From sequence record NC_041973.1: a stretch of 64,000 nt of DNA. One strand, 5' to 3'. A program made the translations under genes and the position numbers. The notes under the pieces are model-generated. The model was not told the origin of the DNA. It made no database searches and saw nothing but the letters and a program-made list of their open reading frames with translations. Positions 5,412 to 62,954 of this stretch are shown here, one piece after another. Each line of letters opens with the position of its first letter. Position 1 is the stretch's first letter.

Positions 5412-5445
5412 CATAACAGGAGAGCTTCGGCTCTCCTTTATGCCG
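5412..5445 (+). terminator. Hairpin + TTATGCCG element
   Basis: aggagagc-ttcg-gctctcct-ttatgccg. Confidence 0.75.
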
Positions 5446-5681
5446 GCCAGGTTTTCCACCCATCTCCTCTATCGGACAACAGATATAGATAGCGTCTGAT
5501 CAACGTCATTGATTACACCTTATTCTACGACCCCAACGTAACCTGTCGACATTCATAAGGGAATGCCACACCGTTGTTTATGCCTGTTCTTATAAAAGAA
5601 GCGACCAAGCAAAAGACCAATAATCCGCAAGCCTTCTTTAAACTAAACCTGTTCTCTTTTCTTATTAATCTGGAGTGTTGT

Positions 5682-6014
5682 ATGGATTTCTCATTTCTAC
5701 TTGATCAAAACCCGTTGAGCTATTACAAAAACGAGTTACCGGCCTTAGTCCGTGAACTTAATCGCTCGATGGAAGATGATGCCCGTGTTTCCTGTGAAGA
5801 CGCACTGAATGCGCTGGTGCATCTCTTTGCAACACCGGGCGAGCTCATCAGCCTTACTATTCAGCGCCACTGTAGCATCGCTGAGCAGAAGCTTCGCTAT
5901 ACGGCAAAGTTCATCAATGACACAGTGGCTACAGTCGAAGGACCTGAGCCAATGGATCTGCGCTATGTGCTAGGGACTGCAGTATTTAACGCCATCACCA
6001 TTCCTATCAAATAA
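5682..6014 (+). CDS. Hypothetical protein (110 aa)
   Basis: Start moved to the ATG at 5682 behind RBS GGAG; ends at a bidirectional terminator. Confidence 0.65.
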   Translation: MDFSFLLDQNPLSYYKNELPALVRELNRSMEDDARVSCEDALNALVHLFATPGELISLTIQRHCSIAEQKLRYTAKFINDTVATVEGPEPMDLRYVLGTAVFNAITIPIK

Positions 6015-6016
6015 AT

Positions 6017-6057
6017 CGGCATAAGAGGAGAGGCATTTGCCTCTCCTCTGTTATGCT
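6017..6057. terminator. Bidirectional hairpin with TTATGC on both strands, between convergent genes
   Basis: cggcataa-gaggagaggc-attt-gcctctcctc-tg-ttatgct. Confidence 0.8.
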
Positions 6058-6076
6058 ACTTCTTTTTTTTTTTGGT

Positions 6077-11341: not shown

Positions 11342-11373
11342 CGGCATAATGAGGGGTCGTCACTGACCCCTCA
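11342..11373 (-). terminator. Hairpin + TTATGCCG element in antisense orientation
   Basis: cggcataa-tgaggggtc-gtcact-gacccctca on +, between two + strand genes. Confidence 0.65.
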
Positions 11374-16076: not shown

Positions 16077-16098
16077 ATAGCACCGAACTGATTTAATC

Positions 16099-16150
16099 AG
16101 CATAAAGACAGAGAGCTTCCTTGCGGAGGCCCTCTGTCTTGTTTATGCCG
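16099..16150. terminator. Bidirectional hairpin with TTATGC on both strands
   Basis: agcataa..aagacagag...ctctgtctt-gt-ttatgccg between convergent genes. Confidence 0.8.
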
Positions 16151-20495: not shown

Positions 20496-20548
20496 GGGTG
20501 AGTGGGTGACCCCCTCACCCACTTCCCTATGACCCAGGAGAGGTTTCG

Positions 20549-24040: not shown

Positions 24041-24088
24041 CCAGCACGGGGGAGGTGACTCCCCCTTTCTTTATTGAAAGGAGTTGCC

Positions 24089-27546: not shown

Positions 27547-27592
27547 CGGCATAGAGGGAGAGGTGTTAGCCTCTCCCTCGTGCTTTATGCCG
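27547..27592. terminator. Bidirectional hairpin with TATGCCG on both strands
   Basis: cggcata-gagggagagg-tgttag-cctctccctc-gtgct-ttatgccg. Confidence 0.8.
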
Positions 27593-35251: not shown

Positions 35252-35283
35252 GGGAGGGGCGCAGGTCTCTCCCTTTTATGCCG
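35252..35283 (+). terminator. Hairpin + TTATGCCG element
   Basis: gggaggggc-gcag-gtctctccc-ttttatgccg. Confidence 0.7.
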
Positions 35284-40402: not shown

Positions 40403-40412
40403 CTTACTTCTG

Positions 40413-40441
40413 GGGTGAGTGAAAACTCACCCTTTATGCCG
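40413..40441 (+). terminator. Hairpin + TTATGCCG element
   Basis: gggtgagt-gaaa-actcaccc-tttatgccg. Confidence 0.75.
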
Positions 40442-44061: not shown

Positions 44062-44089
44062 CTCACCATCGGACAGGGATGTTCTTTTA

Positions 44090-44446: not shown

Positions 44447-44487
44447 TTACCCCAGTTAACCGTGCCGTTTTTATAAAGGTCGTTATC

Positions 44488-45726: not shown

Positions 45727-45728
45727 TT

Positions 45729-46049: not shown

Positions 46050-46054
46050 CTCCT

Positions 46055-46083
46055 AAGAGGACTTCGGTCCTCTTTTATGCCCG
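46055..46083 (+). terminator. Hairpin + TTATGCC element
   Basis: aagaggac-ttcg-gtcctctt-ttatgcccg. Confidence 0.75.
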
Positions 46084-46127
46084 GTTTAATTGTATATAGA
46101 CACAGTACACATCAACCGAGGGCCATC

Positions 46128-47066: not shown

Positions 47067-47071
47067 GAACC

Positions 47072-47101
47072 GGAGAGGCGCATAGCCTCTCTCTTATGCC
47101 G
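47072..47101 (+). terminator. Hairpin + TTATGCCG element
   Basis: ggagaggc-gcata-gcctctct-c-ttatgccg. Confidence 0.7.
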
Positions 47102-47118
47102 TCAAAAGGAAATTAACC

Positions 47119-47529: not shown

Positions 47530-47531
47530 TC

Positions 47532-47963
47532 ATGGACAACAAGATTCAAGTCGTTATCTTATCGGATGATTCGTATCAGCAACGCTTCCTGTTCCTGGAA
47601 GTCCCTGTGCTCGTGAGCAACATTGATACCGACATCACCGTCCGTAAGCTTATTAATGAAGCGACAGCAAAAGGCCGCCCTGATTTTAACGTCTCTCTGA
47701 TCAGTGCAGGGATCGGTATGATTGCCGGTTCTAATAACGTTACCATGGAATACCAGATCAAAGCGAACTGCTCAGGTGCCGCCGGTGAGATCGCTGAGTA
47801 TATCCGCACCGTAGGTAACTACGAGCGGGTACAGGTAGCAACCAAACCCCACATCGCCCTGGCGATGCTGCATAACGAAGATTGGGTAGGTAAGCAAACC
47901 ATCGATCTGATGGATGCAACCCCGTTCCTGACCATTACTCCTCTTACTGAAGAGACCTGCTAA
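47532..47963 (+). CDS. Hypothetical protein
   Basis: RBS GAGGAG; N-terminus loosely similar to the previous ORF. Confidence 0.6.
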   Translation: MDNKIQVVILSDDSYQQRFLFLEVPVLVSNIDTDITVRKLINEATAKGRPDFNVSLISAGIGMIAGSNNVTMEYQIKANCSGAAGEIAEYIRTVGNYERVQVATKPHIALAMLHNEDWVGKQTIDLMDATPFLTITPLTEETC

Positions 47964-47964
47964 C

Positions 47965-48921
47965 ATGGCTGAAGTCATTAAACGCTTGCCGGGGATGAAT
48001 CACCATCCGGCATACCCTGGTATCTGGGTACCCTTCAAAGGTTATCGTCTGAAGGATTACTACGACATCAAACTGAAAACCGGTGAGGTGTATAAGTGCT
48101 GGTACCCGAACGCCACCGCCTGGTCACCCCGGGGTGAGTTAGTGGAAGGTCAGCCGGGCCGGGTAGAGGATGATGATGTGGTGGAGATCCGCCTGTTACC
48201 CGATGAAGAGATCACTGACCGTTATTGGTTCAAAGGCGAAGATCGTCTGAAGCGCAATATCGATTTCTTTGGCGATGTGTTACCGGAAGTGATTACCGCA
48301 GAAGATGGCACGGTAACCTTTAAACCGATCACCCGGCGCGTGTTTGATGAGTTGGTAACCAGTAGCTGGGATGGTGAGAAAGCGATCTGGCTACGGGAGG
48401 ATGAGTTATCCGTCGAGGAGCTCAAGACCAGGCTCTGGAGTGAGAAGGGTGATATCGATCCTGATTCGATACTGGGTCAGTCATTCACCACTTATCTGAC
48501 GCTACTCTGCACCCAAGCCAAATACGAGCTTGAGTTGCTGGAAGTACCGTGGAAGGGCAGCACATTCTACATGAACCTGATGAGCCCCACTGACTATCAG
48601 CGTGAAGCATGTCTGAATGCAGTGGTCAAGCTTGAAGAACTGGCGGCGCAGAAGCAAGCTGAAGAGCGTTTGCCTTCCACACCTTATCGTGGCGTCACGG
48701 CAGCAGGTCGTGCAGCACAACGCGCCGTGGTCACGGCAGCGGCGCATACATTGGTATCTGCCTTGGATCGTAAAGCGATAGCTGGCGCCAAGCACATGAA
48801 AGGTGATCGCTTTGTTACTAAAGGCGAAGCACGGGTAGTCGATGGTCAGAAACTGACCGGGAAGCAATTACGTAAACTGCAGAAGAAACAACGGAGGGCT
48901 GAACGTGGAACAGTCGAATGA
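47965..48921 (+). CDS. Hypothetical protein with a basic C-terminal tail
   Basis: 318 aa; ends KQLRKLQKKQRRAERG. Confidence 0.6.
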   Translation: MAEVIKRLPGMNHHPAYPGIWVPFKGYRLKDYYDIKLKTGEVYKCWYPNATAWSPRGELVEGQPGRVEDDDVVEIRLLPDEEITDRYWFKGEDRLKRNIDFFGDVLPEVITAEDGTVTFKPITRRVFDELVTSSWDGEKAIWLREDELSVEELKTRLWSEKGDIDPDSILGQSFTTYLTLLCTQAKYELELLEVPWKGSTFYMNLMSPTDYQREACLNAVVKLEELAAQKQAEERLPSTPYRGVTAAGRAAQRAVVTAAAHTLVSALDRKAIAGAKHMKGDRFVTKGEARVVDGQKLTGKQLRKLQKKQRRAERGTVE

Positions 48922-49213
48922 AGAAATCAAACTAATCAGTGGTGATGAAGAACGTGGCGAAGCTTCGTATTTAGTCGAAAGTGAATACGAAGCCCGTGAC
49001 GCGTATCAGCATTTCATTGAGCACTATACTGGCGATTCAATCACCGATGGCGAAGATCAGTGGCATACGGTTGCCAGTGAAGGATTCCTCAGTGACCTTG
49101 ACTATCCGGTGATTGTGATCTTCTACATCAACTGGGATCATGCTGACCGTCACGAAGTGAAGTCCGTTCCCGTCAATGGTTTGAGTGCGCTTGCGCCTCA
49201 TCTGTTCAAATAA
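48905..49213 (+). CDS. Acidic hypothetical protein
   Basis: GTG start with RBS GGAGG, overlapping the previous stop. Confidence 0.55.
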   Translation: MEQSNEEIKLISGDEERGEASYLVESEYEARDAYQHFIEHYTGDSITDGEDQWHTVASEGFLSDLDYPVIVIFYINWDHADRHEVKSVPVNGLSALAPHLFK

Positions 49214-49238
49214 GTTCCATTAACCCAAAGAGGTAATT

Positions 49239-49532
49239 ATGTCGTTCACACTGTCAAAGAAACTCGTTCCTGTTCTGCTCACCGCAAAAGACGGCCGTAA
49301 GTACGCCGTTGTTAATGGCGGTAACCGCGCCAAGCTGACCCTCGGCTTTGATGACGGGATCAGTCAGGAGGTTGCTGTGCCTTCTGAGCAGATTCCTGAA
49401 GAAGCGCGCACCAACGGCACTAAACTGTATTTCGATGCAGAAGGTGCGGTGACGGGCTGGGATGCAGCACCGGGTGGAAAGACGAAGTCAAGCACGACTG
49501 CCGGATCAATGACCATGCGTCGTCCTGGCTAA
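49239..49532 (+). CDS. Hypothetical protein
   Basis: RBS AGAGGT; followed by a terminator element. Confidence 0.6.
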   Translation: MSFTLSKKLVPVLLTAKDGRKYAVVNGGNRAKLTLGFDDGISQEVAVPSEQIPEEARTNGTKLYFDAEGAVTGWDAAPGGKTKSSTTAGSMTMRRPG

Positions 49533-49540
49533 ACCATCAG

Positions 49541-49566
49541 GGGGAGGGAAACCTCCCCTTATGCCG
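49541..49566 (+). terminator. Hairpin + TTATGCCG element
   Basis: ggggagg-gaaa-cctcccc-ttatgccg. Confidence 0.75.
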
Positions 49567-49578
49567 TATGGAGGGGTT

Positions 49579-50109
49579 ATGAGTTTATTGATCTACACTG
49601 ACGGGTTGTTAATCGGGGATCGTCGGGGAACACGTAATGCAGAGCATGAGCGATTCATCCGTGACATGAAGAAGACCCATGTTTCGAAATGCAAGCGCTT
49701 AGCGTTAGGGGTGGTAGGGGAAGAGATTCATCCAACAGATCTGCCAAAGGTGATGACCTTCTTTATTAACTCGCTGACCGATCACTATCATCGTGAACAC
49801 GACGTGGGCTATACCCACAGCTATAGCGAAGAAGAGTCATTGGTAGCCGGTCTTGAGAATCGTCGTTTTATCCTGATGACAGCTGACCGGGCTTTTATCA
49901 TTAACTTCGGCTCTTTGACTGAGATCACTCACGAGCCCTGGTATTGCTCAGGTAACGGGATGGTGATGGCCGATGTCTTTCTGACTGCAGGGATGTCGCC
50001 AGGGAAAGTAATTGAAGCGGTGGCTAAACTTAACCTGGAAGTGGGGCATTCATTTACCCGTGTCGAACAGTCTCGCTTAAAACCCTTGATTAAGAAGGTG
50101 GAAGAATGA
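49579..50109 (+). CDS. HslV/Ntn-hydrolase-like protein
   Basis: MS.LIYTDG.L.GDRR and YCSGNG..MA..L.AG....VIEAVAK resemble phage HslV-family peptidases; start behind GGAGG. Confidence 0.45.
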   Translation: MSLLIYTDGLLIGDRRGTRNAEHERFIRDMKKTHVSKCKRLALGVVGEEIHPTDLPKVMTFFINSLTDHYHREHDVGYTHSYSEEESLVAGLENRRFILMTADRAFIINFGSLTEITHEPWYCSGNGMVMADVFLTAGMSPGKVIEAVAKLNLEVGHSFTRVEQSRLKPLIKKVEE

Positions 50110-50618
50110 GTGGCATATTCGCAGCCCAAGGGCGTAACCTGGTGTTTCCTACTCAGCTGGAGAAAAGGAGTGGGCTTTACTACACCCCGCCTCCTGAAGC
50201 GTGCTGGATGCCTTGGGGGCGTTACTTCCCGCTGTCAGCAACCAGCTTCAATATCCTCGAGCATTTCATGACCGGAGAAGATCTGCCACGGGAGAGTTCA
50301 TACTCGACGCATGTGCTCGGTATTCTGGTCACACCAAACGGACTGATCTACGAATACATCAATACCGTTGAAGGGATTAGACGGCGGGTTGTTCCTTTGG
50401 GTAAAGGCGCAGTGTATTGTCGCTCCGATGATCCATTGCTGGAAGAAGCTATGACGGCAGCGATGGTAGTGCATGATCAGCTGGTCGATGCCATTACGTT
50501 AGTGAGTAAGTCACGCAAACTGATGACCCATCAGTACAAATATACAACACTGGACAAAGTATATGCGGAAATAAAGGAACGTAAACTTGTCCTGCAGCCG
50601 CCCACGAGGAACCACTAA
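50106..50618 (+). CDS. Hypothetical protein, possible divergent paralog of 49579
   Basis: GILVTPNGLIYEY and VYCRSD..AM.A...DAITLVSK; ATGA overlap with the previous gene. Confidence 0.45.
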   Translation: MSGIFAAQGRNLVFPTQLEKRSGLYYTPPPEACWMPWGRYFPLSATSFNILEHFMTGEDLPRESSYSTHVLGILVTPNGLIYEYINTVEGIRRRVVPLGKGAVYCRSDDPLLEEAMTAAMVVHDQLVDAITLVSKSRKLMTHQYKYTTLDKVYAEIKERKLVLQPPTRNH

Positions 50619-50648
50619 TTTAACCCCTGTTTATATAGAAAGGAAAAT

Positions 50649-51095
50649 ATGAACAACTTTATTAACGATGCTTTAGATATCATTGAACTTAACGAAAGTA
50701 GTGCACGTACTGAACTCTGCCGCAAGCAGGAAGCTTCGTTACCGGCCTATATTCTCAAACTGGCGACTAGACTTGCCAAGAAGATTACCTATGCAGTTCG
50801 CTTAATGGAGAGACGCGATGAAGGGTATGTTCGTCTTGGTACTTATAGCGATCGCTGGTTACTCTGTTTTGGTGACCGCATCAGCCGTTATGGCATGCAT
50901 ACGTCGGGTAAACATGCGCTCTATCTTACCTTGGATTGGGCTACTTTTATCCGTGACCATAAGTTATTTGACGTGGCAAATCACCTACTTCAATTGGCTC
51001 TGGGCAAGTTGCTTCCTGGGCATTGTGTGTTACTGGGCGGTGAAACACCCAAACACGAATTCGAGTTCGTGATCTGCAAACAAACAACAAAATAA
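50649..51095 (+). CDS. Hypothetical protein (family with 51107 and 53154)
   Basis: C-terminal F.RD..L......L...L....VLLG. Confidence 0.55.
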   Translation: MNNFINDALDIIELNESSARTELCRKQEASLPAYILKLATRLAKKITYAVRLMERRDEGYVRLGTYSDRWLLCFGDRISRYGMHTSGKHALYLTLDWATFIRDHKLFDVANHLLQLALGKLLPGHCVLLGGETPKHEFEFVICKQTTK

Positions 51096-51106
51096 GAGAG
51101 GGCATC

Positions 51107-51526
51107 ATGCCACAGCGTGGTACAGCACCGAACTTTGCAGAATTCACACAGCAAGAACTGGCAGAGAAGGTAATCCCGATACTGCCAGATTACTGTAACC
51201 GTCTTTGTGGGGTCATGATCAGTACATGCTTTGCGCATCGCGTTGGACTTACTGACAAATCTGTACTGCGTTTTGCTGAGTATCACTTCAACCCCACGCC
51301 CGACCTAGCGCGACAAACAGACTGGTCGGTGGAAGTGCGAAGTGAGCAGTGTGTGGTTTATGAACTCAACATCCCCAAGTTTGTCCACGAGGCTGGATTG
51401 GTAAAGCAGTTTTTAGATATCCTCTCCAGTCATCTTGAACTTTATTTCACTGACAGTAAGGTACTCCTCGGCCATGTACTCCCGCCGTGCTTCCTTACTA
51501 TCCGCATTGAGAAAACAACACCATGA
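51107..51526 (+). CDS. Hypothetical protein (same family)
   Basis: FVHEAGL....L...L....VLLG. Confidence 0.55.
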   Translation: MPQRGTAPNFAEFTQQELAEKVIPILPDYCNRLCGVMISTCFAHRVGLTDKSVLRFAEYHFNPTPDLARQTDWSVEVRSEQCVVYELNIPKFVHEAGLVKQFLDILSSHLELYFTDSKVLLGHVLPPCFLTIRIEKTTP

Positions 51527-52290
51527 ATCTTTATCTCGTCTCTGACAGTCGTTATACCCCACCGGGTGATTTCTACAACAACTGGTTAGTCCACGCTAAT
51601 AGTCGTGACAGTGCCGCGATGTTGTGTAATTCACGTTGTCTGGTTGATACCTTTGAGATTGGTAGCCTGAACTACAACAACGGCGAACTGATCATGATGC
51701 ACAAGACCGTCCAGCACACGGATGAACCGCGTCTGAAGCAGAAGGTTGGGGATGCACTGTATTATCCTTTAACGGTATCACCTGACAGCAGTGCCTTTGA
51801 CCGTATCATTGGTGAGATCGTGAACAAAGCCGCCTCTCCGTTACCGGAAGGTGTCTCTGTCGATCGCCTTCTCATCAATGCTGACAGTCCTGAAGCGCTG
51901 TTCTTTATCTCGCGCCATGACTTTGGTGCATCACGTTGTTACTACAAGATCCCCAGTGAACTCGACAGCCAAATCTCTAAACTGCTGGACTTCAATAAAG
52001 GTGAGCGTATTCCCCGTACGTCTCACGAACCGGTTGTGCTCTCCTGGCGTAGTCGTCTCTCCCTCATGATCGCGCGTCAGCATGATGATGCGTACAACCA
52101 TGAGAAGCTGGAGATCTACCGTAAAATGGCATTTGATCTGGTAGCTACCGCTACCGTCGAGGATAGCGCCACGCCTGTTGCCCTCGACCCTGATCAACCG
52201 GACTTCAAAGTCTGGATGCCGGGAATTGATGAAGAGAAGATCCATCAAGCGCTGGATACGTTAGGTGCGCCACGTCAGTTAGGGGAATAG
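51523..52290 (+). CDS. Hypothetical protein
   Basis: 255 aa, ATGA overlap with the previous gene. Confidence 0.6.
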   Translation: MNLYLVSDSRYTPPGDFYNNWLVHANSRDSAAMLCNSRCLVDTFEIGSLNYNNGELIMMHKTVQHTDEPRLKQKVGDALYYPLTVSPDSSAFDRIIGEIVNKAASPLPEGVSVDRLLINADSPEALFFISRHDFGASRCYYKIPSELDSQISKLLDFNKGERIPRTSHEPVVLSWRSRLSLMIARQHDDAYNHEKLEIYRKMAFDLVATATVEDSATPVALDPDQPDFKVWMPGIDEEKIHQALDTLGAPRQLGE

Positions 52291-52311
52291 CCTATTATAT
52301 AGGTTGTAACT

Positions 52312-52431
52312 CAATGGGATGGTGATCTTTTATCTTCCGCGGGTGAGGGTTAGAACCCGGCTGTGGCCGCATAGCCAAAGTCGGTTAATCAAAGTCGACG
52401 GATTTGGATTACCCGGCGTGACTTGTCATTG
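52312..52431 (+). ncRNA. Candidate structured non-coding RNA (four-way junction)
   Basis: Closing stem 52338-46/52409-18 encloses three hairpins; outer stem 52312-17/52426-31; intergenic; ends before a hairpin-TTATGCCG element. Confidence 0.5.
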
Positions 52432-52478
52432 TTTCACTTTGTTCTACTACACAAACAGCTCAACTCTCTCATAATTCA

Positions 52479-52508
52479 AGGGGTGGGGTAACTCACCCCT
52501 TTATGCCG
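52479..52508 (+). terminator. Hairpin + TTATGCCG element
   Basis: aggggtggg-gtaa-ctcacccct-ttatgccg. Confidence 0.75.
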
Positions 52509-52523
52509 CAAGGATCTATTATC

Positions 52524-52856
52524 ATGCAGGAATTCTTCAAAAGCTACGGCACGTACTTCTTTGATGTACTCATGTTTATCATGGTGTTCGCCTGGTGTTT
52601 CTGTGGCAGTGGCGGTACACGTCATGACAAAAACAAATGGTTGCGTTACGGCGCACCTGTTGCATTTGGTCTTTTTGTTGTGCTGGTCGTCCACGGGTTT
52701 GGTGCATTTGATCGTTATCTGGAAAGGAATAAGTGCGCTGACTTACCAATAGGTGTCGGTGTAATGATTGAAGACCGCTGCTACAAGCGCGTTGATGGAC
52801 CCGTGTACATATCCGCCGACAGTACCGTGTACAAGGAGAGCAATGTACATGACTGA
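52524..52856 (+). CDS. Small two-TM membrane protein
   Basis: Start MQEFFK behind AAGGA; two hydrophobic helices. Confidence 0.6.
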   Translation: MQEFFKSYGTYFFDVLMFIMVFAWCFCGSGGTRHDKNKWLRYGAPVAFGLFVVLVVHGFGAFDRYLERNKCADLPIGVGVMIEDRCYKRVDGPVYISADSTVYKESNVHD

Positions 52857-53052
52857 TTTGTGGTTGTACATTGCAATCTTTCTGCTCTGTTATATCTGGG
52901 CATTCTTCGGTCTTCCACCTACCGGTAATAAAAGAAAGCTTTATCTGTATCCGGGAATCGTTGCAGTAGCGTTCTGTTTAGGTGTAATGGCGATTAAGAA
53001 CTGCAGTGATTCAACCACACAATATCAACCGCTGTACAACGTGCATCAATAA
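52849..53052 (+). CDS. Small two-TM membrane protein
   Basis: Start MTDLWL behind AAGGAG. Confidence 0.6.
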   Translation: MTDLWLYIAIFLLCYIWAFFGLPPTGNKRKLYLYPGIVAVAFCLGVMAIKNCSDSTTQYQPLYNVHQ

Positions 53053-53055
53053 CGG

Positions 53056-53083
53056 GAGGAGGCTTTGGCCTCCTCTTATGCCG
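53056..53083 (+). terminator. Hairpin + TTATGCCG element
   Basis: gaggaggc-tttg-gcctcctc-ttatgccg. Confidence 0.75.
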
Positions 53084-53153
53084 ACTATTCTTTTTTGGTT
53101 ATTTCCTACATCTACCCGCAAATCATTTAGCCCATTATACACTGGAGTTATTC

Positions 53154-53705
53154 ATGGAAAAGATTACGAGCGATACGATCCTTGCTAAGTTACGTGAGGT
53201 GGCAGAAACAAACAAAGAAAACCAACATCATAAACTCCGCTCAATAAGCCAAACCATGGCGTACAACATTGAAGCGATCGTCGAGCTGATTGCGTTATCG
53301 GGTGAGATGCACCTTGACCTGCTTGATCGACACAAGGTTGATGCGATCATAGAGCCGCATTACAAAGGCAATCAACGGGCTTATAGTCGATTGAGCCATA
53401 CCGCCTCTATTCATACGGGCATGGAATACCTTGCCGGCAACGCACACATCTATACCAACGACGACGGTAAAGAAGCGGTACGAATCATCTGCACCTTTAA
53501 ATTTAAGCGCGACTTCCTGCAACCTAGCTTATTACCTAAGGTACTTCACTACTGCCTGCGGGAGCTTAAGCCGCAACTTGCTGACAGTGGTGCTGTCCTC
53601 TTCCACACACAGGGTGAGCTGGAAGACCCTCGTCTTAAAGGCATTCCGGGCTGGCACGTCGACGCCAACGTCCGTGATAACTCCATTGTCATTACTTTAC
53701 GTTAA
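53154..53705 (+). CDS. Hypothetical protein
   Basis: RBS GGAG; C-terminal half resembles 50649 and 51107. Confidence 0.55.
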   Translation: MEKITSDTILAKLREVAETNKENQHHKLRSISQTMAYNIEAIVELIALSGEMHLDLLDRHKVDAIIEPHYKGNQRAYSRLSHTASIHTGMEYLAGNAHIYTNDDGKEAVRIICTFKFKRDFLQPSLLPKVLHYCLRELKPQLADSGAVLFHTQGELEDPRLKGIPGWHVDANVRDNSIVITLR

Positions 53706-53715
53706 GGAATCATAC

Positions 53716-54426
53716 ATGATCGTTGTTGTTGTTGATACTGAATCGACTGCCTTGGATGAACTCGCGGGTATTCTTAGTTTGTCCGCTATTCGCACTAACG
53801 TGGCTGACATGAGTTGCATCAAGCACCTGATCGGTGTGCACCAAGCCGGCAAGACGCATGACGACATCTTCCATGCCGTATTAAACCTCAATGAACAATA
53901 CGTGATGGGTCGTACCTTCTTGCAAAGCACGCAGGATTGGTGGATGAAGAAAACCACCCCGGCGGCGAAGGCTTCAGTAACCGGACCAACGCAGTCTGCA
54001 AAAGATGCTTTGACAGCATTTGTGGCTTTCATCGAAAAGGCCATTGAGGCGACGATTAACGAACGCGGGGAGAAAGCGAAGGTCCAGCTGTACTACCGTG
54101 GCGACTTCGATGCTAAAGCCATTGCGTCCCTGGCAAAAGCGGTGGGTGTTGAACTCCCGTATATCTTCAATCAGAACAAAGAGATCCGCACATATATCGA
54201 TGCCAAGCTGGACACGGATATCGGTTATATCCCGTGGCTCGGTTACCCAGAAGGACTGGGGCGTCATAGCTCACTCGATGATGTTCTAATCGATGGCTTC
54301 GAGATGGCGGTGGCCTATCGCATCAATCACCTCGAAAAGTTCGATAAAAAGTCGGTGCCGGGCGAGATCGCCAAACTGAAAGAAACGTACCCTGTTCCGG
54401 AGAAAACCCATGCAAAATCTAAATGA
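53716..54426 (+). CDS. DEDD 3'-5' exonuclease (Rv2179c/DUF5051-like)
   Basis: VVDTESTAL (ExoI), T.DWW.K, RGDFD (ExoII), HSSLDD (ExoIII); start behind AAGGA. Confidence 0.8.
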   Translation: MIVVVVDTESTALDELAGILSLSAIRTNVADMSCIKHLIGVHQAGKTHDDIFHAVLNLNEQYVMGRTFLQSTQDWWMKKTTPAAKASVTGPTQSAKDALTAFVAFIEKAIEATINERGEKAKVQLYYRGDFDAKAIASLAKAVGVELPYIFNQNKEIRTYIDAKLDTDIGYIPWLGYPEGLGRHSSLDDVLIDGFEMAVAYRINHLEKFDKKSVPGEIAKLKETYPVPEKTHAKSK

Positions 54427-55132
54427 CCGTATCTTTGCCAATTATGATGGTTACATTGAAGCTATTGATGCGCATTTTAAACCTACCTATCAACTGCAGC
54501 TGGCTGAGCAAGTCATCCCGGGTGAGCAGATGGATAAGCTTGTAACCTGGATGGACCACAACGCCCATGTCAAGGGTGCAACCGTCTACCTGATGGAGTT
54601 GGTGCCTGATCTCGATAAACCGCATCCTGCACAATCAGAGATGCGTGTGTTTATTGCACTCGGTATGTTTAATCGTGAAGTCAACCCTGATTTGCCTTAC
54701 TGGTGTCATGTACATCGCCATTACCCGGTTAACCTCGCTGTCGACTTGATTGTTACTGACCTGCAAGGCGTTCCTGTAACCCATGCCGTTCTGACTGCGT
54801 TTAAGTCATTTGATCGAGCGCGTACCTACAGGGATAATCTCGGCGGTAAAGGCGGGCATCAACCGCATCACGAAATCCATACTGGCATTATTGACCAAAG
54901 TGGTAAGGTGATCTTCGAAGCCTACGGGAATATCAACTGGCATACCAAGAATGCCATTCGTCTGCTGGCCGAACGACAGATCCTGCAGGAAGATACCGAG
55001 TTGTCAGCGGTGTGGTTACTGGCGGGTTTAAAAGCAGGTGTCAACTGGAAAGTCGAAGACCATGTTGACATCATGAAAGCAATTGATACTTTCCGTCCGA
55101 GGAATACCCATGATTTTAACGGCTATGTTTAA
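54410..55132 (+). CDS. Hypothetical protein
   Basis: 240 aa, RBS GGAGA. Confidence 0.6.
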   Translation: MQNLNDRIFANYDGYIEAIDAHFKPTYQLQLAEQVIPGEQMDKLVTWMDHNAHVKGATVYLMELVPDLDKPHPAQSEMRVFIALGMFNREVNPDLPYWCHVHRHYPVNLAVDLIVTDLQGVPVTHAVLTAFKSFDRARTYRDNLGGKGGHQPHHEIHTGIIDQSGKVIFEAYGNINWHTKNAIRLLAERQILQEDTELSAVWLLAGLKAGVNWKVEDHVDIMKAIDTFRPRNTHDFNGYV

Positions 55133-55874
55133 GAAGTGCTTTGGTGCTTCATCTGTCTATAAAGAAGATGACGGCAGCACGCGTATTACCGCCGACCAGT
55201 ATGAGCTTACGCTGGGGCGATCCTACAACCCTAAGCTTAAGCGTAAGGTAGGTCGGGGATTTGGCTTCTATGTCGAAAATGGTGAGAAGCTCGAGTTCGT
55301 CCTGCGGGGTTACTGGTTTGTGTTGATTGCCTGGAGCAAGAAGCGCAAATCACTCAAGTGGGACGAAGTGGAGAATGCACCGACCTACGGCTTCAATGTT
55401 GTCGACTCTGACTTAGCGATCTATCTGGGCAACGAATCCGCTAAGTCAGACAAACACATCAGCATGCGTAGTCGCAGCAAATACATCCCCCTGCCTTGGG
55501 CCTGGGTCTTCCATAAGCGTGAAGTGTTAACCACCCGTGACACCTGGGCTGATGTCAAAGAAGGTGCGCTGTCTCAAGAGTGGTCGTTCCCCGCCACATA
55601 CATCACCAAGCACAATGAAGTGCAAGAGTTGATGGTCGAAGCGAAGATGGAGCGCATGAGTTGGCGCCTGGCATGGCTGCCTTGGTTCGCGCCGGTTAGC
55701 AAGAAAGACCGCTCGGTAAGTTACAAGTACCACGGGAACGGCGGTAACGGAGTTGGTCACGATGCCAGTGGGTGGAAAGGCGGGGTCATCGGCGGTGGCA
55801 TTATCATGCGGGACAATGAACACAACCCGAAAGAAACATTCGACCGTTTAATTAAAGAGCAGCATTACGGCTAA
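55110..55874 (+). CDS. Hypothetical phage protein with a GWKGG motif
   Basis: Start set behind GAGGA. Confidence 0.55.
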   Translation: MILTAMFKKCFGASSVYKEDDGSTRITADQYELTLGRSYNPKLKRKVGRGFGFYVENGEKLEFVLRGYWFVLIAWSKKRKSLKWDEVENAPTYGFNVVDSDLAIYLGNESAKSDKHISMRSRSKYIPLPWAWVFHKREVLTTRDTWADVKEGALSQEWSFPATYITKHNEVQELMVEAKMERMSWRLAWLPWFAPVSKKDRSVSYKYHGNGGNGVGHDASGWKGGVIGGGIIMRDNEHNPKETFDRLIKEQHYG

Positions 55875-55886
55875 GAAGGAAAGCAC

Positions 55887-57038
55887 ATGCGTCAGTATTT
55901 GGATGGGATTCGTTACATCTTTGAGAACGGGTCACAACGAGGGGATCGCACCGGGGTAGGTACGTTGTCGGTGTTCTCGATGAAGCAGACTTATGATCTG
56001 CGTCTGGGATTCCCACTGGTCACCAGTAAGAAAGTGCGTATCGATTTTATTATCGAAGAGCTCATCTCTTTCCTGTCGGGTAATCCCGATATGCCGGGTG
56101 TGGGTATCTGGGATGATTGGCGTGTCAAAGACGAAGTCTCTCGTGAAGTCCCGTTAGAGAACCACGAGCGTTTAAAACTCTGGGTTGAGAAGTCGGACCT
56201 GAAGTATAACGTTGCTTACCTTCAACTCAATGCGATGGGTTCTGTCGAAGCGGGTCATCGTTTCCTGGATGAGCAAGGGATTCCACGTAACAGAAAAGAA
56301 GTACTGGTAGCAGAAGGTGCACTCAATGCACCCTATGGGCCAGCGTGGCGTGCGTGGAAAGGTCGTCAGGGCGAAGTGCATGATCAGATCAGTTATCTGC
56401 TCAAGCTGCTTAAAAACAATCCTACGAGCCGTCGTATGCTATTGTCTGCCTGGGACCCGGCGAATATGCCGGATGAGTCTATCAGTCCGCAGGATAACAT
56501 CATTGATGGCAAGCCACCTCTGACTCCGTGTCATTGGGCGTTTGAGCTGTACACTGACGAAATCCTGGCAGAGGAACGCCTTGATTGGGTCGAAGCTAAT
56601 GCACCTAGTCTCTGGGAAGACTACAATGATCGTTCAGGACGTGGTCAGTGGTTAGGCGACACAGACAGTAAGCGCCTTCATGAATTCCTGGACGAAGCCG
56701 GCGTACCGAAGTATTACCTGGATCTGAAGTATCACCAACGTTCCTGTGACTATATGGTTGGCGTGCCGTATAACATCGCCAGCTATGCGGTGTTGCAGCA
56801 CATGTTCGCCGCCACCTGTAACATGATCCCGCGGATACTGGAAGCGGATATGACTAACATCCATATCTACAACTTCCACAAAACCAATGCGGTCATGCAG
56901 GCCAGTCGCAGCCCACGCGCACTACCCACTCTGAAGGTACTCGCCGCTCACGATAAGTTGGAAGACTATACGTTGGAAGACTTTGAACTCGAAGGTTATG
57001 ATCCGCATCCTTTTATTAAATATGAAAGAGCGGTCTGA
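55887..57038 (+). CDS. thyA: Thymidylate synthase
   Basis: DRTGVGT, FPLVTSKK, YGPAWR, RRMLLSAW, PCH catalytic Cys, QRSCD..GVPYNIASY, HIY; contains in-frame insertions. Confidence 0.97.
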   Translation: MRQYLDGIRYIFENGSQRGDRTGVGTLSVFSMKQTYDLRLGFPLVTSKKVRIDFIIEELISFLSGNPDMPGVGIWDDWRVKDEVSREVPLENHERLKLWVEKSDLKYNVAYLQLNAMGSVEAGHRFLDEQGIPRNRKEVLVAEGALNAPYGPAWRAWKGRQGEVHDQISYLLKLLKNNPTSRRMLLSAWDPANMPDESISPQDNIIDGKPPLTPCHWAFELYTDEILAEERLDWVEANAPSLWEDYNDRSGRGQWLGDTDSKRLHEFLDEAGVPKYYLDLKYHQRSCDYMVGVPYNIASYAVLQHMFAATCNMIPRILEADMTNIHIYNFHKTNAVMQASRSPRALPTLKVLAAHDKLEDYTLEDFELEGYDPHPFIKYERAV

Positions 57039-57070
57039 TCCACTGGTGCGTTGAAGGGAGCACAACGGTA

Positions 57071-57436
57071 ATGAAGAGAGAGTCCAGTTACACCCTGGTC
57101 TTTGGGGAAGGTAGTACTGAAGAAGATGTCAACACCCTGCGTGAGATGGTGTCACACATGCGGGGGTTGACTGGGTTGTCGCAGCTGGGGGCGTTTGAGG
57201 TGTTCGTTACCCATTATGAATTGCAACGTAAAGACGCAGGGCTAATCACCAGTAATCTTCCGGTGAATGCACAGTCGTTGTTTGATGTCAGTGATCGACA
57301 GAACTGGCTGACACCGCTGTTCACTTCCCGGGGGTTAGTGGCGTGTGATTTGTTGTTGTTACTGAAGCAAGGCAAATGGACCGGAGAACACCTCAAGGTG
57401 ACCTTTCGGGTAAAGGGTATCAGGGCGAAAGCATAA
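57071..57436 (+). CDS. Hypothetical protein
   Basis: RBS GGGAG; followed by a terminator element. Confidence 0.55.
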   Translation: MKRESSYTLVFGEGSTEEDVNTLREMVSHMRGLTGLSQLGAFEVFVTHYELQRKDAGLITSNLPVNAQSLFDVSDRQNWLTPLFTSRGLVACDLLLLLKQGKWTGEHLKVTFRVKGIRAKA

Positions 57437-57442
57437 CGCATA

Positions 57443-57470
57443 CGGAGGGGTCATTCCCTCCGCTATGCCG
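57443..57470 (+). terminator. Hairpin + CTATGCCG element
   Basis: cggaggg-gtcatt-ccctccg-ctatgccg. Confidence 0.7.
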
Positions 57471-57511
57471 ATTAAGTTTTTAACAAAGTTTACTGCAGAT
57501 CTTTTCAGACC

Positions 57512-57519
57512 TATATCAC
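57512..57519 (+). promoter_or_regulatory. Candidate early promoter TATATCAC (CAGACC context)
   Basis: One mismatch to phiKZ TATATTAC; same flank as 40045. Confidence 0.55.
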
Positions 57520-57568
57520 GTCGGTGAATAACCTTTCACTAATTAACCAATCCGTAAGGAGTTTTATC

Positions 57569-58945
57569 ATGGCTGCATTAAAATCTAAAGTTGAACTGTT
57601 TCACTGGTATCAGGAACTGAAAACTGAATTTAAAACCGGCAAGATTACCGTGTTCGAATTTGAGCGGCAAGTGCTCAGCGAAATTCTTTCCCTGACCGAT
57701 ACTGGTAAAACACCATCTACTGCCAAAATCAGTCTGGTAGTGGACATCCTTAATTCTGTGGTTTTTGATCATGTGTTTACCGCAGACGGTATCATTGACC
57801 TGGACAACATGCTCGCTCGTGAACACGTACGCAACATTTCGGAATTGACGGCAGCACGCAATAACTTTATTACCATACAAGCCCAGGCCCGTCTGAACAA
57901 AGAAAAGGAACAGACTGCGAAACCAGCAGAGCAGAAGGCGTTTGCCAAGTTTCCAACGAAAGAAGAGCTCGAATATTGGGTTAATGCCAGAAAGCTATTC
58001 CGTTATGGTAACCCCAATACGCTCGGCACTGAAGCATACCAGGAGGTTGTCAAATACTGGCATCTGGTCGATAAATATCTGGGTACATTAAAACTGGAAC
58101 TGGATCACACCGACCCTAACTACGTCGATAACATCCTGTTGATTGACTACTTTGTATCGTTGGTCGCCAAGCAAGAGGTTCCTGAGGAAGAACGCAGGCA
58201 TCTGAAAGACACACTTAGCAGTCTATATGCGTGCCCCATTAAAACCCCACACATCGATGCATTTGTCGAACGTGACCAACACCCCCTTCCAGTTAAGCCA
58301 AAACAACCACCCATCGCGCAACAAGCCATCGACCGCGCTATTGCCTGGCGTGAAGAGGAAACCAAAACAAACCATCAGCAAAAAGACATATTACGAGAAT
58401 TCGCCGATCAATACTGTCCGGTAATGGTGGCCAAGCAACATGCCACTCAGCAGTTGTTTGATTTCGTTGCTCGTGCGGTGAAACGTGTCTTGACCGCCAT
58501 TGCTCAGCCAAACAACCCGGAAGACGCCGAGATGCTGGCAAAAGGTCATGCCATCAACATTCTCAATGTTAAGCATGGTGTAATTGGTGTCAGTACCACG
58601 ATTACCAGAAACGGTCTGGTCAAGTTACGCATCTTCGCTGAACGTGAACTATGTAACGAGGACTACGGTATTCCGACTCTGTCGTATAATCAAGTCCGTC
58701 AATCACCTCATGCAACGTTCAGCATACCAATGCCGGCGCTGATAGATGGGTTCATTAACATGTGGGATATCCCTAATCAGGCCCCTCGCCATATGCATAA
58801 TAGCGTAGGCGGTATGTTGGGTAATCCCTATCCGTTACAGCAGCTTGATGGTTTGATGTCAGCTATTGCAAGAGAAGCAGCCGAGTACGGCGTTACGCCT
58901 ACTTATGGCATGATCGAAGACAGCCTTATCGTTGTGCTGCATTAA
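57569..58945 (+). CDS. Hypothetical protein with a repeated helical N-module
   Basis: Start MAALKS behind AAGGAG; WYQELK..FKTG.I module shared with the next gene. Confidence 0.65.
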   Translation: MAALKSKVELFHWYQELKTEFKTGKITVFEFERQVLSEILSLTDTGKTPSTAKISLVVDILNSVVFDHVFTADGIIDLDNMLAREHVRNISELTAARNNFITIQAQARLNKEKEQTAKPAEQKAFAKFPTKEELEYWVNARKLFRYGNPNTLGTEAYQEVVKYWHLVDKYLGTLKLELDHTDPNYVDNILLIDYFVSLVAKQEVPEEERRHLKDTLSSLYACPIKTPHIDAFVERDQHPLPVKPKQPPIAQQAIDRAIAWREEETKTNHQQKDILREFADQYCPVMVAKQHATQQLFDFVARAVKRVLTAIAQPNNPEDAEMLAKGHAINILNVKHGVIGVSTTITRNGLVKLRIFAERELCNEDYGIPTLSYNQVRQSPHATFSIPMPALIDGFINMWDIPNQAPRHMHNSVGGMLGNPYPLQQLDGLMSAIAREAAEYGVTPTYGMIEDSLIVVLH

Positions 58946-58952
58946 TTCACAC

Positions 58953-58982
58953 GGGGAGGTTTCCCTCCCCCTTTTATTTTTT
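58953..58982 (+). terminator. Hairpin ggggagg-tttc-cctcccc plus T-tract
   Basis: Classic intrinsic terminator layout. Confidence 0.6.
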
Positions 58983-59008
58983 AATTAACCTACTGTGAGA
59001 ATTTAACC

Positions 59009-59710
59009 ATGAACAAAGAAACTTATACTACCTGGTACAATGGATTAAAAGAAAGATTGGCGACTGGGCACATTAATCAGGAACACTACGAGACACTTAT
59101 TGTTGACAATCTAAGTTCATTGATTACTCATTTCTTCAATAGTCGATACGACGATGGTCATATGTCTCTGGAGGAGCATTTTGCGTTAGTTAATCATTAT
59201 TTCGAACTGGTTGCTGATGCAGAAATATCAGAACGCAGTGCCATGCTCATGGTACGTTCTGTAGCTAGCAGTATTCAAAAGCTACCAGCGGCTAAAGCCT
59301 TCGCAGAGAAACATAACACTCCGGCGCCGTCAATTAAAGAAATTCTTGGTAGTCGACCTGGTTTACTGCGTAAGCATGCTGCCAGCACGACCGAGAAGAT
59401 GATAGGGTGTCCGGTGATCACCCAGGCCAACGAACCTGAGAACGAAGTAACCATTGACTTACCCTGGAAATTGGCATTGCACGTTTACAAAGGGTTCCTG
59501 GTAAAGGCGCTGATGTCAAAGCACGGATATAAATACAGTGATGCGTATAACTACATTACTGATCATCAGAACAAATACGACGAACTCTTGGCAGAAGTCC
59601 TCAACAACATTATTGCTAATGAGGAATCGCATCTGGTGTCGGTAGGTGGCGGCATCACTGCAGCGGGTACTGGTCTGGTGGTAAGCGGGATTATTAAGCC
59701 GGAGGAGTGA
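59009..59710 (+). CDS. Chimeric protein: helical N-module plus RNAP beta-prime switch-2/dock fragment without an active site
   Basis: Residues about 108-203 align without gaps to phiKZ gp55 as recalled and motif-wise to bacterial beta-prime; no NADFDGD motif. Confidence 0.75.
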   Translation: MNKETYTTWYNGLKERLATGHINQEHYETLIVDNLSSLITHFFNSRYDDGHMSLEEHFALVNHYFELVADAEISERSAMLMVRSVASSIQKLPAAKAFAEKHNTPAPSIKEILGSRPGLLRKHAASTTEKMIGCPVITQANEPENEVTIDLPWKLALHVYKGFLVKALMSKHGYKYSDAYNYITDHQNKYDELLAEVLNNIIANEESHLVSVGGGITAAGTGLVVSGIIKPEE

Positions 59711-60270
59711 TGAAAGGAGAGATAGAGACACGCTTCAGAAGACACTACGGCAACCACATTAAACGGGGTAGTGATATCGCAGTGCCTTTATACCACATTA
59801 GTCTACAGAATGACTTGGAGGGGCTATGGCGACCTAAAGCCCCTGACTCGCCATTTGATATTCCGAAGAAACCCAACATCATTACTGAAATGCCGCTCCC
59901 GCGTATCTGTGTAGCACCATCTATCGAACAGTGCTTCTGGGCAATCTATCCCAATATCTCTAAGCTCTTTGAAGAGGAAGAATACGCAGCGGTTTGTTTT
60001 GCGGTTTATCAACCGATTCTGCATGCCGGTATTGCTGTCGTGGATACCAGTACGTTAACGCAATGCCGACTAGTGCACGATGCACATATTACCGGCGAGC
60101 ATTGGTTACTTAGTGATACCACCATGTGTGTGATCGACTTTATTCAGGTTAATAACACCTCACACGGCGAGTTCGTAAAGTTCCATCCGTTTAATACCCC
60201 GGTTGGTAACGAATGGGAGCTCGCCCCTAAAAATGTTGTTTATCATTCACTTAAATTAACGGAGTTGTAA
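59707..60270 (+). CDS. Hypothetical protein, possible ADP-ribosyltransferase fold
   Basis: LYHIS...RICVAPS...TGEHW layout fits the ART strand-1 His, strand-2 Ser and terminal Glu pattern. Confidence 0.4.
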   Translation: MMKGEIETRFRRHYGNHIKRGSDIAVPLYHISLQNDLEGLWRPKAPDSPFDIPKKPNIITEMPLPRICVAPSIEQCFWAIYPNISKLFEEEEYAAVCFAVYQPILHAGIAVVDTSTLTQCRLVHDAHITGEHWLLSDTTMCVIDFIQVNNTSHGEFVKFHPFNTPVGNEWELAPKNVVYHSLKLTEL

Positions 60271-61691: not shown

Positions 61692-61699
61692 GCTACGTG

Positions 61700-61729
61700 G
61701 CCGGAGGATTACCTCCGGCTGTTATGCCT
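61700..61729 (+). terminator. Hairpin + TTATGCC element
   Basis: gccggagg-atta-cctccggc-tg-ttatgcct. Confidence 0.7.
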
Positions 61730-61851
61730 GTTCTTTCTTCTTTGTAATTCTCAACACATTCGGTCTTTGTTATACAAAGGCTATAATCTTTGTCCCGAGC
61801 TAAGGGTAACGTGAACAGTTATGCTGGCTTACTTTTTAAAGGTATCTTTTC

Positions 61852-62382
61852 ATGGATGGTTTATTTAATCTCTCCTCATGGCAATCGATTTTACTTGTGG
61901 TAGTTGTACTCCTGCTGTGGGCGTATTACCAACGACTTCAACACCTGCGTCGTAAGTATCATCGCCGTAATGAACGCATGATGGCGCAGAGCGTGGTCAT
62001 GACATCCCGGCTGTTACTGAGTACCTTCTCGGAGATTGTGGAACGCGCTAAAGAGGAGGACATCTACCAGCGTGATCCTAACTCCCCGATTGCGGCAGAC
62101 CGGGCCAGTGCGATGGCCTGCTCCTCCATCTTCAGTGGGTTGTATAACCTGGTTGTGGTGCCCGTCACCACCCTTGATCCGGTGTTCAACGATTTATTGA
62201 TTACCGGTACTGAGCGGGAAGATGTTGAGGAAGGGGTCTTTGTGTCGTTTTATTTGGGTGAACAGCGTAATGATGTGGTTAGGCATTTTATACCCGACCG
62301 GTCGTTACAGGCCTTTATCACCCAAACGCGTGCCTTCAGTGCTTACCTGCGACAGGCTGCGAATACAAAACCACCACAATGA
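61852..62382 (+). CDS. N-terminally anchored membrane protein (paralog A)
   Basis: TM helix followed by YQRLQHL. Confidence 0.6.
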   Translation: MDGLFNLSSWQSILLVVVVLLLWAYYQRLQHLRRKYHRRNERMMAQSVVMTSRLLLSTFSEIVERAKEEDIYQRDPNSPIAADRASAMACSSIFSGLYNLVVVPVTTLDPVFNDLLITGTEREDVEEGVFVSFYLGEQRNDVVRHFIPDRSLQAFITQTRAFSAYLRQAANTKPPQ

Positions 62383-62390
62383 GGTGACAC

Positions 62391-62921
62391 ATGACCAATT
62401 ATGGTTTTCTGCTGAACACAGTACTTCTGGCTTTTCTTATTTGGTTTGGTTACCGACTGCACACGTTGGTAAACAACAGCGAGAAAGCCACCCTCGCCGC
62501 TGATCATAACGCCAAGCTGCGCTTCCTGACCTATGCAGCCCGGCAGATAATGAGTGACTTGTATACGTCGCTCAATCTTCCGACGCTCACCGGGTGTGCG
62601 AAGATGTATCTACGCGATGACGGCAAGCTTGATAATATTGAAGTCATTATGCGACTCTTCATGAAAACCCATAATGAGATTATTACCAAGCTCTCCGAGG
62701 GATTGGTGTCGGATCATTTGAAGATCACCGATGTTAAAGTTACCCATGATCTGGTGACCAACGAAGTGCTCATCACACTCTTGTATCCGAATAAAGTCAC
62801 TGACATCCTGGTCTTCCATCATAACCACCTGGCGCAGGCGATCTACCAACTGGATCGATTGCAGCATCGGCTCTCAACGTTCCACAAAGCGGTGCCGAAC
62901 CGCGACCTGTACCAACTCTAA
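62391..62921 (+). CDS. N-terminally anchored membrane protein (paralog B)
   Basis: TM helix followed by GYRLHTL; same length (176 aa). Confidence 0.6.
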   Translation: MTNYGFLLNTVLLAFLIWFGYRLHTLVNNSEKATLAADHNAKLRFLTYAARQIMSDLYTSLNLPTLTGCAKMYLRDDGKLDNIEVIMRLFMKTHNEIITKLSEGLVSDHLKITDVKVTHDLVTNEVLITLLYPNKVTDILVFHHNHLAQAIYQLDRLQHRLSTFHKAVPNRDLYQL

Positions 62922-62924
62922 ACC

Positions 62925-62954
62925 AAGGGAGGGCTTCGGCTCTCCCTTATGCCA
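62925..62954 (+). terminator. Hairpin + TTATGCC element
   Basis: aagggagggc-ttcg-gctctccctt-atgcca. Confidence 0.7.

Follow-up and report, generated by a model that had tools for sequence, protein, structure and literature searches.

Among the nucleus-forming jumbo phages, a terminator motif has been mapped by sequencing of RNA 3' ends in phiKZ and 201phi2-1. In phiKZ, ONT-cappable-seq yielded 133 termination regions, 61 of which share a stem-loop followed by TTAT, with the consensus BCCYCCCCHWWDGGGRRGGBYTTATKYYGT (Putzeys et al. 2024, PMC10914365), and in 201phi2-1 a motif named A (n=59) 'strongly resembles' that of phiKZ (Poppeliers et al. 2024, PMC11512511). Transcription in nucleus-forming phages does without the host RNA polymerase (RNAP), and a 2025 review of the biology of these phages makes no mention of termination. 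The subject here is an element composed of a GC-rich hairpin and a motif, most often TTATGCCG, directly 3' of it, which is dispersed through a stretch of 64,000 nucleotides of record NC_041973.1 (the window) that corresponds with 100% identity to bases 1-64000 of Erwinia phage vB_EamM_RAY. TTATGCCG is an exact fit to TTATKYYG, and the RAY element is the local form of the already published phiKZ/201phi2-1 terminator motif; its kind is not new. A search of the literature turned up no account of this motif for RAY or Agricanvirus.

RAY is a jumbo phage of the genus Agricanvirus, with a genome of 271,182 bp and E. amylovora as its host. The annotation of its record includes chimallin, PhuZ and eight RNAP beta-type genes, and by experiment the phage is nucleus-forming, with the non-virion RNAP (nvRNAP) subunits gp002, gp223, gp248 and gp249 found in the nucleus (PMC10299810). 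Together with the match of gp2 to phiKZ GP123 described below, these features identify RAY as a phiKZ-related phage with multisubunit RNAPs of its own. Matches to sigma-70-like promoters in window positions 40001-60000 are not enriched (22 against 24.0 in shuffles), which is consistent with host-RNAP-independent transcription. For the genome-wide survey the whole RAY genome was assembled from six loci, and positions outside the window are given by locus number (L006:17166, for example, is genome position 267166).

Within the window TTATGCCG occurs 12 times where 1.90 copies are expected, a count reached in 0 of 100 shuffles, and 11 of these 12 copies lie directly 3' of a hairpin. The twelfth, at 507-514 within the gp1 coding sequence, has no upstream hairpin and is regarded as a chance copy outside the element set. 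The looser YTATGC on its own shows no enrichment in the window (49 against 57 expected), so the signal is the combination of hairpin and motif. Variants found directly 3' of GC-rich hairpins are TTATGCCC, CTATGCCG, TTATGCCT, TTATGCCA, TTATGCTG and TTATGCTA. The original prediction, made from the letters of the window, had described 15 intergenic hairpins followed by (T/C)TATGC, and context extraction and folding bear this out at every one of them, each position being the start of a stable hairpin with the motif after it. Seventeen hairpin faces in the window have folding energies between -11.7 and -24.6 kcal/mol and z-scores between -2.5 and -6.6. Across the whole genome, 51 of 136 TATGCC copies stand directly after a hairpin with a folding free energy (dG) <= -10; 179 permuted hexamers average 1.6 such copies and never exceed 7. 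A curated set of 64 RAY sites gives the consensus T-TATG-C-C-G, with T before TATG in 56 sites, C at +4 in 60, C (50) or T (12) at +5 and G at +6 in 48; TATGCCG is present at 39 of them. These 64 sites carry the GC-rich stem-loop directly before TTAT and the K-Y-Y-G tail after it that characterise the phiKZ type. The stems had been called unrelated, which does not hold: most share a purine-rich 5' arm, GGAGRGG, and a 3' arm, CCYCTCC, and a few cassettes of about 40 nt are identical copies set in unrelated flanks. An Rfam search of the window matched no family.

At most sites the element lacks the U-tract of bacterial terminators. The canonical rule asks for at least 5 U in the 8 nt directly after the stem; at 51 of the 64 RAY sites even the best stretch of 8 nt has no more than 4 T, and a canonical terminator scan of window positions 40001-60000 called 0 of the 7 element sites there. 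A true U-tract is found only in a + strand subset, in which T8-11 comes right after an extended stem whose outer arm, TTATGCYG, pairs with an upstream CRGCATAA (6063-6073 is the example in the window). The earlier description of the motif as standing in place of a U-tract thus applies to about 80% of sites and fails for this + strand subset. Runs of T>=7 are themselves strand-biased, with 20 of 26 on the + strand (e.g. L002:45985, L003:10367, L003:43291, L005:27825), and most lie 0-5 nt past an extended hairpin with TTATGCYG/CRGCATAA outer arms, such that many bidirectional terminators have a + face that looks canonical and a - face that has TATGCCG only.

The element's placement and orientation relative to genes separate a terminator from a promoter. 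At 57 of the 64 curated sites the element follows a co-oriented gene, and of these 57 a convergent gene is faced by 26, the other 31 having a co-oriented gene downstream; three of the seven sites that do not follow a co-oriented gene are artefacts of the calls of open reading frames (ORFs). Of 18 convergent junctions in RAY, 17 have the element, 12 of them on both strands, and it is present in 0 of 17 divergent intergenic gaps (Fisher p = 4e-9 for 17/18 against 0/17). Presence at convergent junctions combined with absence from divergent gaps argues for a terminator and not a promoter. In the window the convergent junctions 6014/6077, 16076/16158 and 27544/27594 each have the motif on both strands around a single stem, as had been noted from the sequence, and the pattern generalises to the whole genome. 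Placement at gene 3' ends together with bidirectionality at convergent pairs is also what is found in the phiKZ type.

The stem and the motif of the element differ in how they change between relatives. Orthologous sites were aligned in Ea35-70 (about 93% identity) and AH06 (about 78%), and the stems are seen to change between orthologues by compensatory swaps at 6037, by a wobble at 40425 and by outright replacement at 47084, with TTATGCCG invariant across all of these changes and the bases just past the motif diverging. Some elements are also identical, or nearly so, to one another. Three identical bidirectional cassettes of about 40 nt are found at L003:19161-19196, L004:4371-4404 and L006:1763-1796, at different convergent junctions and with unrelated flanks, and a second, near-identical family occupies window 6024-6049, L002:45947, L004:21093 and L006:20269. 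This identity could reflect copying by recombination or convergence onto one optimal sequence.

The combination extends well beyond the genus. Strong hairpins were located and the 5-mers in the next 18 nt ranked, and TTATG/TATGC is the top-ranked 5-mer in RAY, AH06, KpGz_1, Proteus phage 10 (which was too diverged for BLAST-anchored orthology and entered this enrichment test only), phiKZ and RSL2. The first rank goes to TTTAT or TTTTA in Goslar and 201phi2-1, with an enrichment of about 5-7-fold for TATGC/TATGT. No such motif is enriched after hairpins in the T4 and E. coli controls, the E. coli region being a weak positive control for the method since it shows no T-run enrichment either. A survey of the motif across relatives had been proposed as a check: in 79 metagenomic IMG/VR loci around GP123 homologs TATG follows hairpins 419 times against 69.7 expected, and TTATG 275 times against 28.6, with the full word taking the form TATGYYG. 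The 376 distinct instances from across the family give the consensus TATG-Y-Y-G-T, with TATGCCG the commonest form and CTATGYYG in one clade. The SPN3US-like and CR5-like jumbo phages of E. amylovora lack the motif; in Wellington and EarlPhillipIV, E. amylovora jumbo phages that encode GP123 homologs, the observed/expected counts of TTATG after hairpins are 0/0.7 and 1/0.8, and Wellington, EarlPhillipIV and SPN3US have hairpins with TTTAT or T-runs instead of TATG, with RisingSun and EL intermediate. In these genomes the motif tracks phage lineage and not host. There is also positional orthology: in phiKZ as in RAY, the gene for the major capsid protein has a terminator of the phiKZ type after it.

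The link to real RNA ends comes from 201phi2-1, for which eight termination-site coordinates are printed in the main text of the published study and were used as a check on 3'-end position. All eight, on the + strand, lie 8 nt past a GC stem within stem-TTTATGY[Y]G or a sequence much like it (TTTATACCG, TTATATGCCG). In seven of the eight the end is at the second base past the G of TATG (T0+5) and in one at the first (T0+4), and the next template base is the conserved G. As the 201phi2-1 ends fall at the second Y, RAY transcripts should, by homology, end on the second C of TATGCCG. The same eight terminators are active in uninfected P. chlororaphis, where six of them match or beat lambda T0, and the cloned elements reduce downstream reporter expression in vivo (PMC11512511).

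Taken together, position, orientation, conservation and homology to motifs at mapped 3' ends uphold the proposal of termination and not promotion, and it is highly probable (roughly 0.87) that the RAY elements are transcription terminators of a hairpin-dependent type common to phiKZ-related nucleus-forming jumbo phages. In such a mechanism the nascent RNA would fold into the GC-rich stem-loop, and the polymerase would then transcribe a short, weak (U)UUAU tract followed by G-Y-Y, with release of the RNA predicted some 8 nt beyond the stem, on the second of the two pyrimidines in TATGYYG and just before the conserved G. At convergent pairs a single stem would serve both directions, and CGGCATAA and TTATGCYG would pair to lengthen it. 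The conserved TATG/YYG bases would act as a sequence-specific pause or release signal. Since RAY has virion and non-virion RNAPs of its own and is transcribed in the phage nucleus, the signals would be used by the phage polymerases, and they are probably not exclusive to them. The original prediction had put the element forward as a candidate phage-RNAP-specific terminator, and in that form the claim is unsupported, because activity of the 201phi2-1 terminators in uninfected host cells means that the signal is not exclusive to phage polymerases.

A number of observations weigh against this explanation. Four motif copies face antisense between co-directional genes. One of these, 11348(-), belongs to an element at 11342-11373 between two + strand genes, with a hairpin at 11350-11373 and TTATGCCG on the - strand only; it is also the lone exception to the invariance of the motif, since AH06 keeps the hairpin and has lost the motif. 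(Three weak antisense-facing copies elsewhere in the genome resemble it.) The RAY 3' ends are placed by homology to those of its relatives, and long-read 3' ends do not distinguish true termination from ends left where an exonuclease has been halted by a protective hairpin. About 80% of the sites fall short of the canonical U-tract rule, and simple intrinsic termination leaves unexplained the conservation of A-U-G-Y-Y-G across genera in which chimallin is only about 24% identical. Finally, the RAY stems do not have the published form CCYCCCC...GGGRRGG, their polarity being reversed. Polarity is mixed across the family, with 117 Y-rich, 98 R-rich and 161 mixed stems among the 376 instances, so the RAY reversal looks like a genus-level trait and not a family-defining one.

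What, then, might read the conserved TATG? The late promoters of phiKZ need TATG, with its G as +1 (PMC4666361), and in a 2026 structure GP123, a core subunit, binds non-template TATG in a beta-lobe pocket (PMC12809450). A tentative suggestion, unlikely as it stands, is that the GP123-type pocket of the nvRNAP also reads the TATG of the terminator and that the polymerase-specific pause so produced makes a short U-tract, a minimal UUUAU, sufficient; the same pocket might also permit re-initiation at the same TATG, giving stop-start transcription. This idea refines the terminator explanation and does not replace it. In RAY the candidate reader is gp2 (1001..2689, + strand), the ortholog of GP123 and a beta-like subunit of the nvRNAP, which matches PDB 7ogp_E with a phmmer E = 3e-44. 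The pocket is conserved in gp2: residues F151, H331, S144, S334, K158 and K190 are invariant in a five-genus alignment, in which 6 of 14 pocket positions are invariant against 62 of 543 overall (P = 0.0025), and among 84 homologs F151, H331 and Q466 hardly vary, with an aromatic residue at positions 185 and 406 in every case. In all, 287 phage records encode a GP123 homolog. The clade of SPN3US, Wellington and EarlPhillipIV has an altered pocket (C144, S/T158, E334) and no TATG after hairpins, with two of the three on RAY's own host; if the pocket does read TATG, the terminators of this kind would have been lost in the clade alongside the changes to the pocket, leaving an evolutionary trace.

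Several points count against a role for the pocket. Its covariation with the motif is essentially one evolutionary contrast, the 201phi2-1 ends fall 2 nt beyond the G in TATG and so outside the promoter register, and the structural study, which does not discuss pausing or termination, describes the pocket as incomplete in the transcribing complex (PMC12809450). Moreover, the 201phi2-1 terminators also function with host RNAP when the cells are uninfected, and TATG occurs 1376 times in the RAY genome, mostly without visible effect. A profile comparison between the GP123 family and gp163, the beta-like subunit of the RAY virion RNAP, gave no detectable similarity, so that the pocket is not assessable for early transcription. 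That one four-base word should mark both stops and starts, with on-the-spot restart at co-directional junctions in the manner of negative-strand RNA viruses, is similarly doubtful.

It is very unlikely that the element instead serves as a late promoter, or as terminator and promoter in one, with the next transcript beginning at TATG and the hairpin only incidental. TATG is indeed the core of the phiKZ late promoter, 31 of the 57 sites do have a co-oriented gene downstream, and a hairpin-less TATGCC stands directly upstream of gp316 at the position equivalent to that of the phiKZ late promoter P119L. Yet at the 26 sites facing a convergent gene a promoter would make antisense RNA only, and the 17 divergent gaps, where only promoters are called for, are without the element. 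The element does not sit upstream of and pointing toward the gene that it would serve: the spacing between it and the start codon that follows varies widely (interquartile range 27-129 nt), and it is the upstream stop codon that the element tracks. P119L has no upstream hairpin, and a separate motif, YCTAYATTAC, is found in divergent gaps and after several terminators. The late promoter was rejected because of the way the element is oriented and because the 17 divergent gaps lack it.

The separate motif deserves a description of its own. It is promoter-like, YCTAYATTAC(C) with an A/T-rich stretch before it, and has 15 intergenic copies, all on the + strand; they lie upstream of genes, both in divergent gaps and roughly 20 nt past several terminators, and include window 32743-32752, L002:15037, L002:35917, L003:16961 and L004:7290, among others. 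In phiKZ the capsid terminator is followed by TCTATATTACAG, which is similar to it. At L002:28640-28684 no more than about 4 nt separate a promoter-like CCTACATTACC from a hairpin and TTATGCCA downstream of it. This promoter-proximal terminator would give a very short RNA, and may be an attenuator or a small RNA such as those of phiKZ 5' untranslated regions. The TATGCC upstream of gp316 lies at L006:17166-17171 (genome 267166), in a 28-nt gap between a DnaB-like helicase gene (-) and gp316 (+), and as the positional equivalent of P119L it may be a RAY late promoter.

Most unlikely, too, is a signal for 3' processing or RNA stability, by which an endonuclease would cut at UUAUG, or an exonuclease trim back to the hairpin, with the true ends lying elsewhere. 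Sequencing of 3' ends alone does not tell processing from termination, and the hairpins are stable enough to stop 3' exonucleases; trimming to a hairpin, however, would not select TATGYYG on the 3' side of the stem, the eight 201phi2-1 ends are uniformly at 8 nt past it, which is the classical termination distance, and the cloned elements lower the expression of a downstream reporter. That the element is mobile or repetitive DNA of the REP/MITE kind, or a DNA-binding site unconnected with transcription, has next to no probability, for despite the three identical cassettes and the near-identical family, identity ends at the borders of the cassettes and the stems are mostly different in sequence, the motif, which is strand-specific, goes with the 3' ends of genes, orthologous sites keep their structure by compensatory change, and a one-sided motif is unfit for a dimeric site; the repeat was rejected in that only a few cassettes are identical and conservation of the whole element independent of gene ends is not seen.

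Within the window the three bidirectional terminators illustrate how a single stem is shared. At the gp5(+)/gp6(-) junction (6017..6073) the stem is at 6024-6049, with TTATGCCG running from 6024 to 6017 on the - face and TTATGCTA at 6051-6058 on the + face, followed by T11 at 6063-6073 past the extended stem; two compensatory pair swaps are seen here in AH06. The gp13(+)/gp14(-) terminator (16098..16150), which is kept in both Ea35-70 and AH06, has its stem at 16105-16140, TTATGCCG at 16143-16150 on the + face and TTATGCTG from 16105 to 16098 on the - face. At gp20(+)/gp21(-) (27547..27592) the stem is at 27554-27579, with TTATGCCG at 27585-27592 on the + face and CTATGCCG from 27554 to 27547 on the - face.

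Apart from the antisense-facing element at 11342-11373, the remaining sites are all + strand terminators. The first follows gp4 (5412..5445), with a hairpin at 5416-5439 and TTATGCCG at 5438-5445; it folds at -17.0 kcal/mol (z -5.3), is identical in Ea35-70, and its RNA 3' end is predicted at about 5444. Further along, the terminator after gp29, a transglycosylase gene, at 35252..35283 has its hairpin at 35252-35273 and TTATGCCG at 35276-35283, and that after gp40 (40412..40441) has a hairpin at 40412-40433 and TTATGCCG at 40434-40441, where AH06 has an A->G change that turns a stem pair into a wobble, together with an unchanged motif and a diverged flank. After gp49 (46055..46082) the hairpin at 46055-46074 is followed by TTATGCCC at 46075-46082. 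The terminator after gp50 (47072..47101), with its hairpin at 47072-47092 and TTATGCCG at 47094-47101, is the one whose stem sequence is fully replaced in AH06, with hairpin and TTATGCCG retained. Three others end in TTATGCCG: after gp55 (49538..49566; hairpin 49538-49561, motif 49559-49566), between gp60, which ends at 52290, and gp61, with an annotated start at 52503 (52476..52508; hairpin 52476-52503, motif 52501-52508), and after gp62 (53054..53083; hairpin about 53054-53077, motif 53076-53083). The last three have variant motifs, namely CTATGCCG at 57463-57470 after gp68 (57442..57470; hairpin 57442-57463), TTATGCCT at 61722-61729 after gp73 (61697..61729; hairpin 61697-61722) and TTATGCCA at 62947-62954 after gp75 (62925..62954; hairpin 62925-62948).

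The annotated starts of gp50, gp56 and gp61 (46077, 49561 and 52503) are the ATG within a terminator motif. Each of these genes has an in-frame ATG with better Shine-Dalgarno spacing downstream, at 46128, 49579 and 52524 respectively, so the three annotated starts are probably mis-called. A reading of the motif's ATG as a start codon with its ribosome-binding site was rejected, as it opens an ORF of at least 60 codons at 11 of the 64 sites and the median is 15 codons. The window also contains strong intergenic hairpins without TATGC, at 20496-20528, 24046-24067, 41678-41705 and 58951-58972, some with T-rich tails such as TTTATTTTTT at 58973, which are likely to be terminators of a second, more canonical flavour.

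For RAY the outcome is a map of about 60 transcription-unit ends, which in the window amounts to 15 loci and 18 faces with predicted single-base 3' ends, and more broadly a wide variety of nucleus-forming jumbo phages have the phiKZ terminator word in the form TATGYYG. If it were true that the promoter pocket reads TATG, the element would be a new kind of sequence-specific terminator, and a useful orthogonal part for engineering nucleus-forming phages.

The RAY element can be set beside several known systems. With the canonical intrinsic terminators of bacteria it has in common the GC hairpin followed by a U-rich start and, in the + strand subset, a true T8-11 run past an extended stem; the canonical release distance of about 8 nt past the stem is matched in 201phi2-1, whose relatives of the RAY elements work with host RNAP in vivo as canonical terminators do. 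It differs from them in the 51 of 64 sites that are poor in T, and the conserved A, G, Y, Y and G of the motif have no counterpart in bacterial terminators. The elemental pause of multisubunit RNAPs has the consensus G-10 Y-1 G+1, and the class II terminator of T7 RNAP needs no hairpin and has a different sequence. In both of these, as proposed for the RAY-type motif, a short conserved sequence contributes to stopping, and a pyrimidine 3' end with G next, as in 201phi2-1, resembles Y-1/G+1; in RAY, however, there is no G at -10, a position that lies in the pyrimidine-rich arm. The late promoter of phiKZ has the same tetranucleotide TATG, for which the pocket is conserved in RAY gp2, but P119L is without a hairpin, and the RAY element, unlike a late promoter, is found at convergent junctions and is absent from divergent gaps. 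Closest are the terminators of phiKZ and 201phi2-1, which have the same GC-rich stem-loop directly before TTAT-K-Y-Y-G, a similar copy number (61 in phiKZ, 59 in 201phi2-1 and about 60 in RAY) and the same location at gene 3' ends, bidirectional where genes converge, within one phage family and a two-RNAP transcription system. The differences are that the RAY stem has a purine-rich 5' arm and a pyrimidine-rich 3' arm where phiKZ has CCYCCCC...GGGRRGG, that the RAY tail is a near-fixed GCCG where that of phiKZ is G/T-Y-Y-G, and that the RAY sites are predicted from sequence and those of its relatives come from mapped RNA 3' ends.

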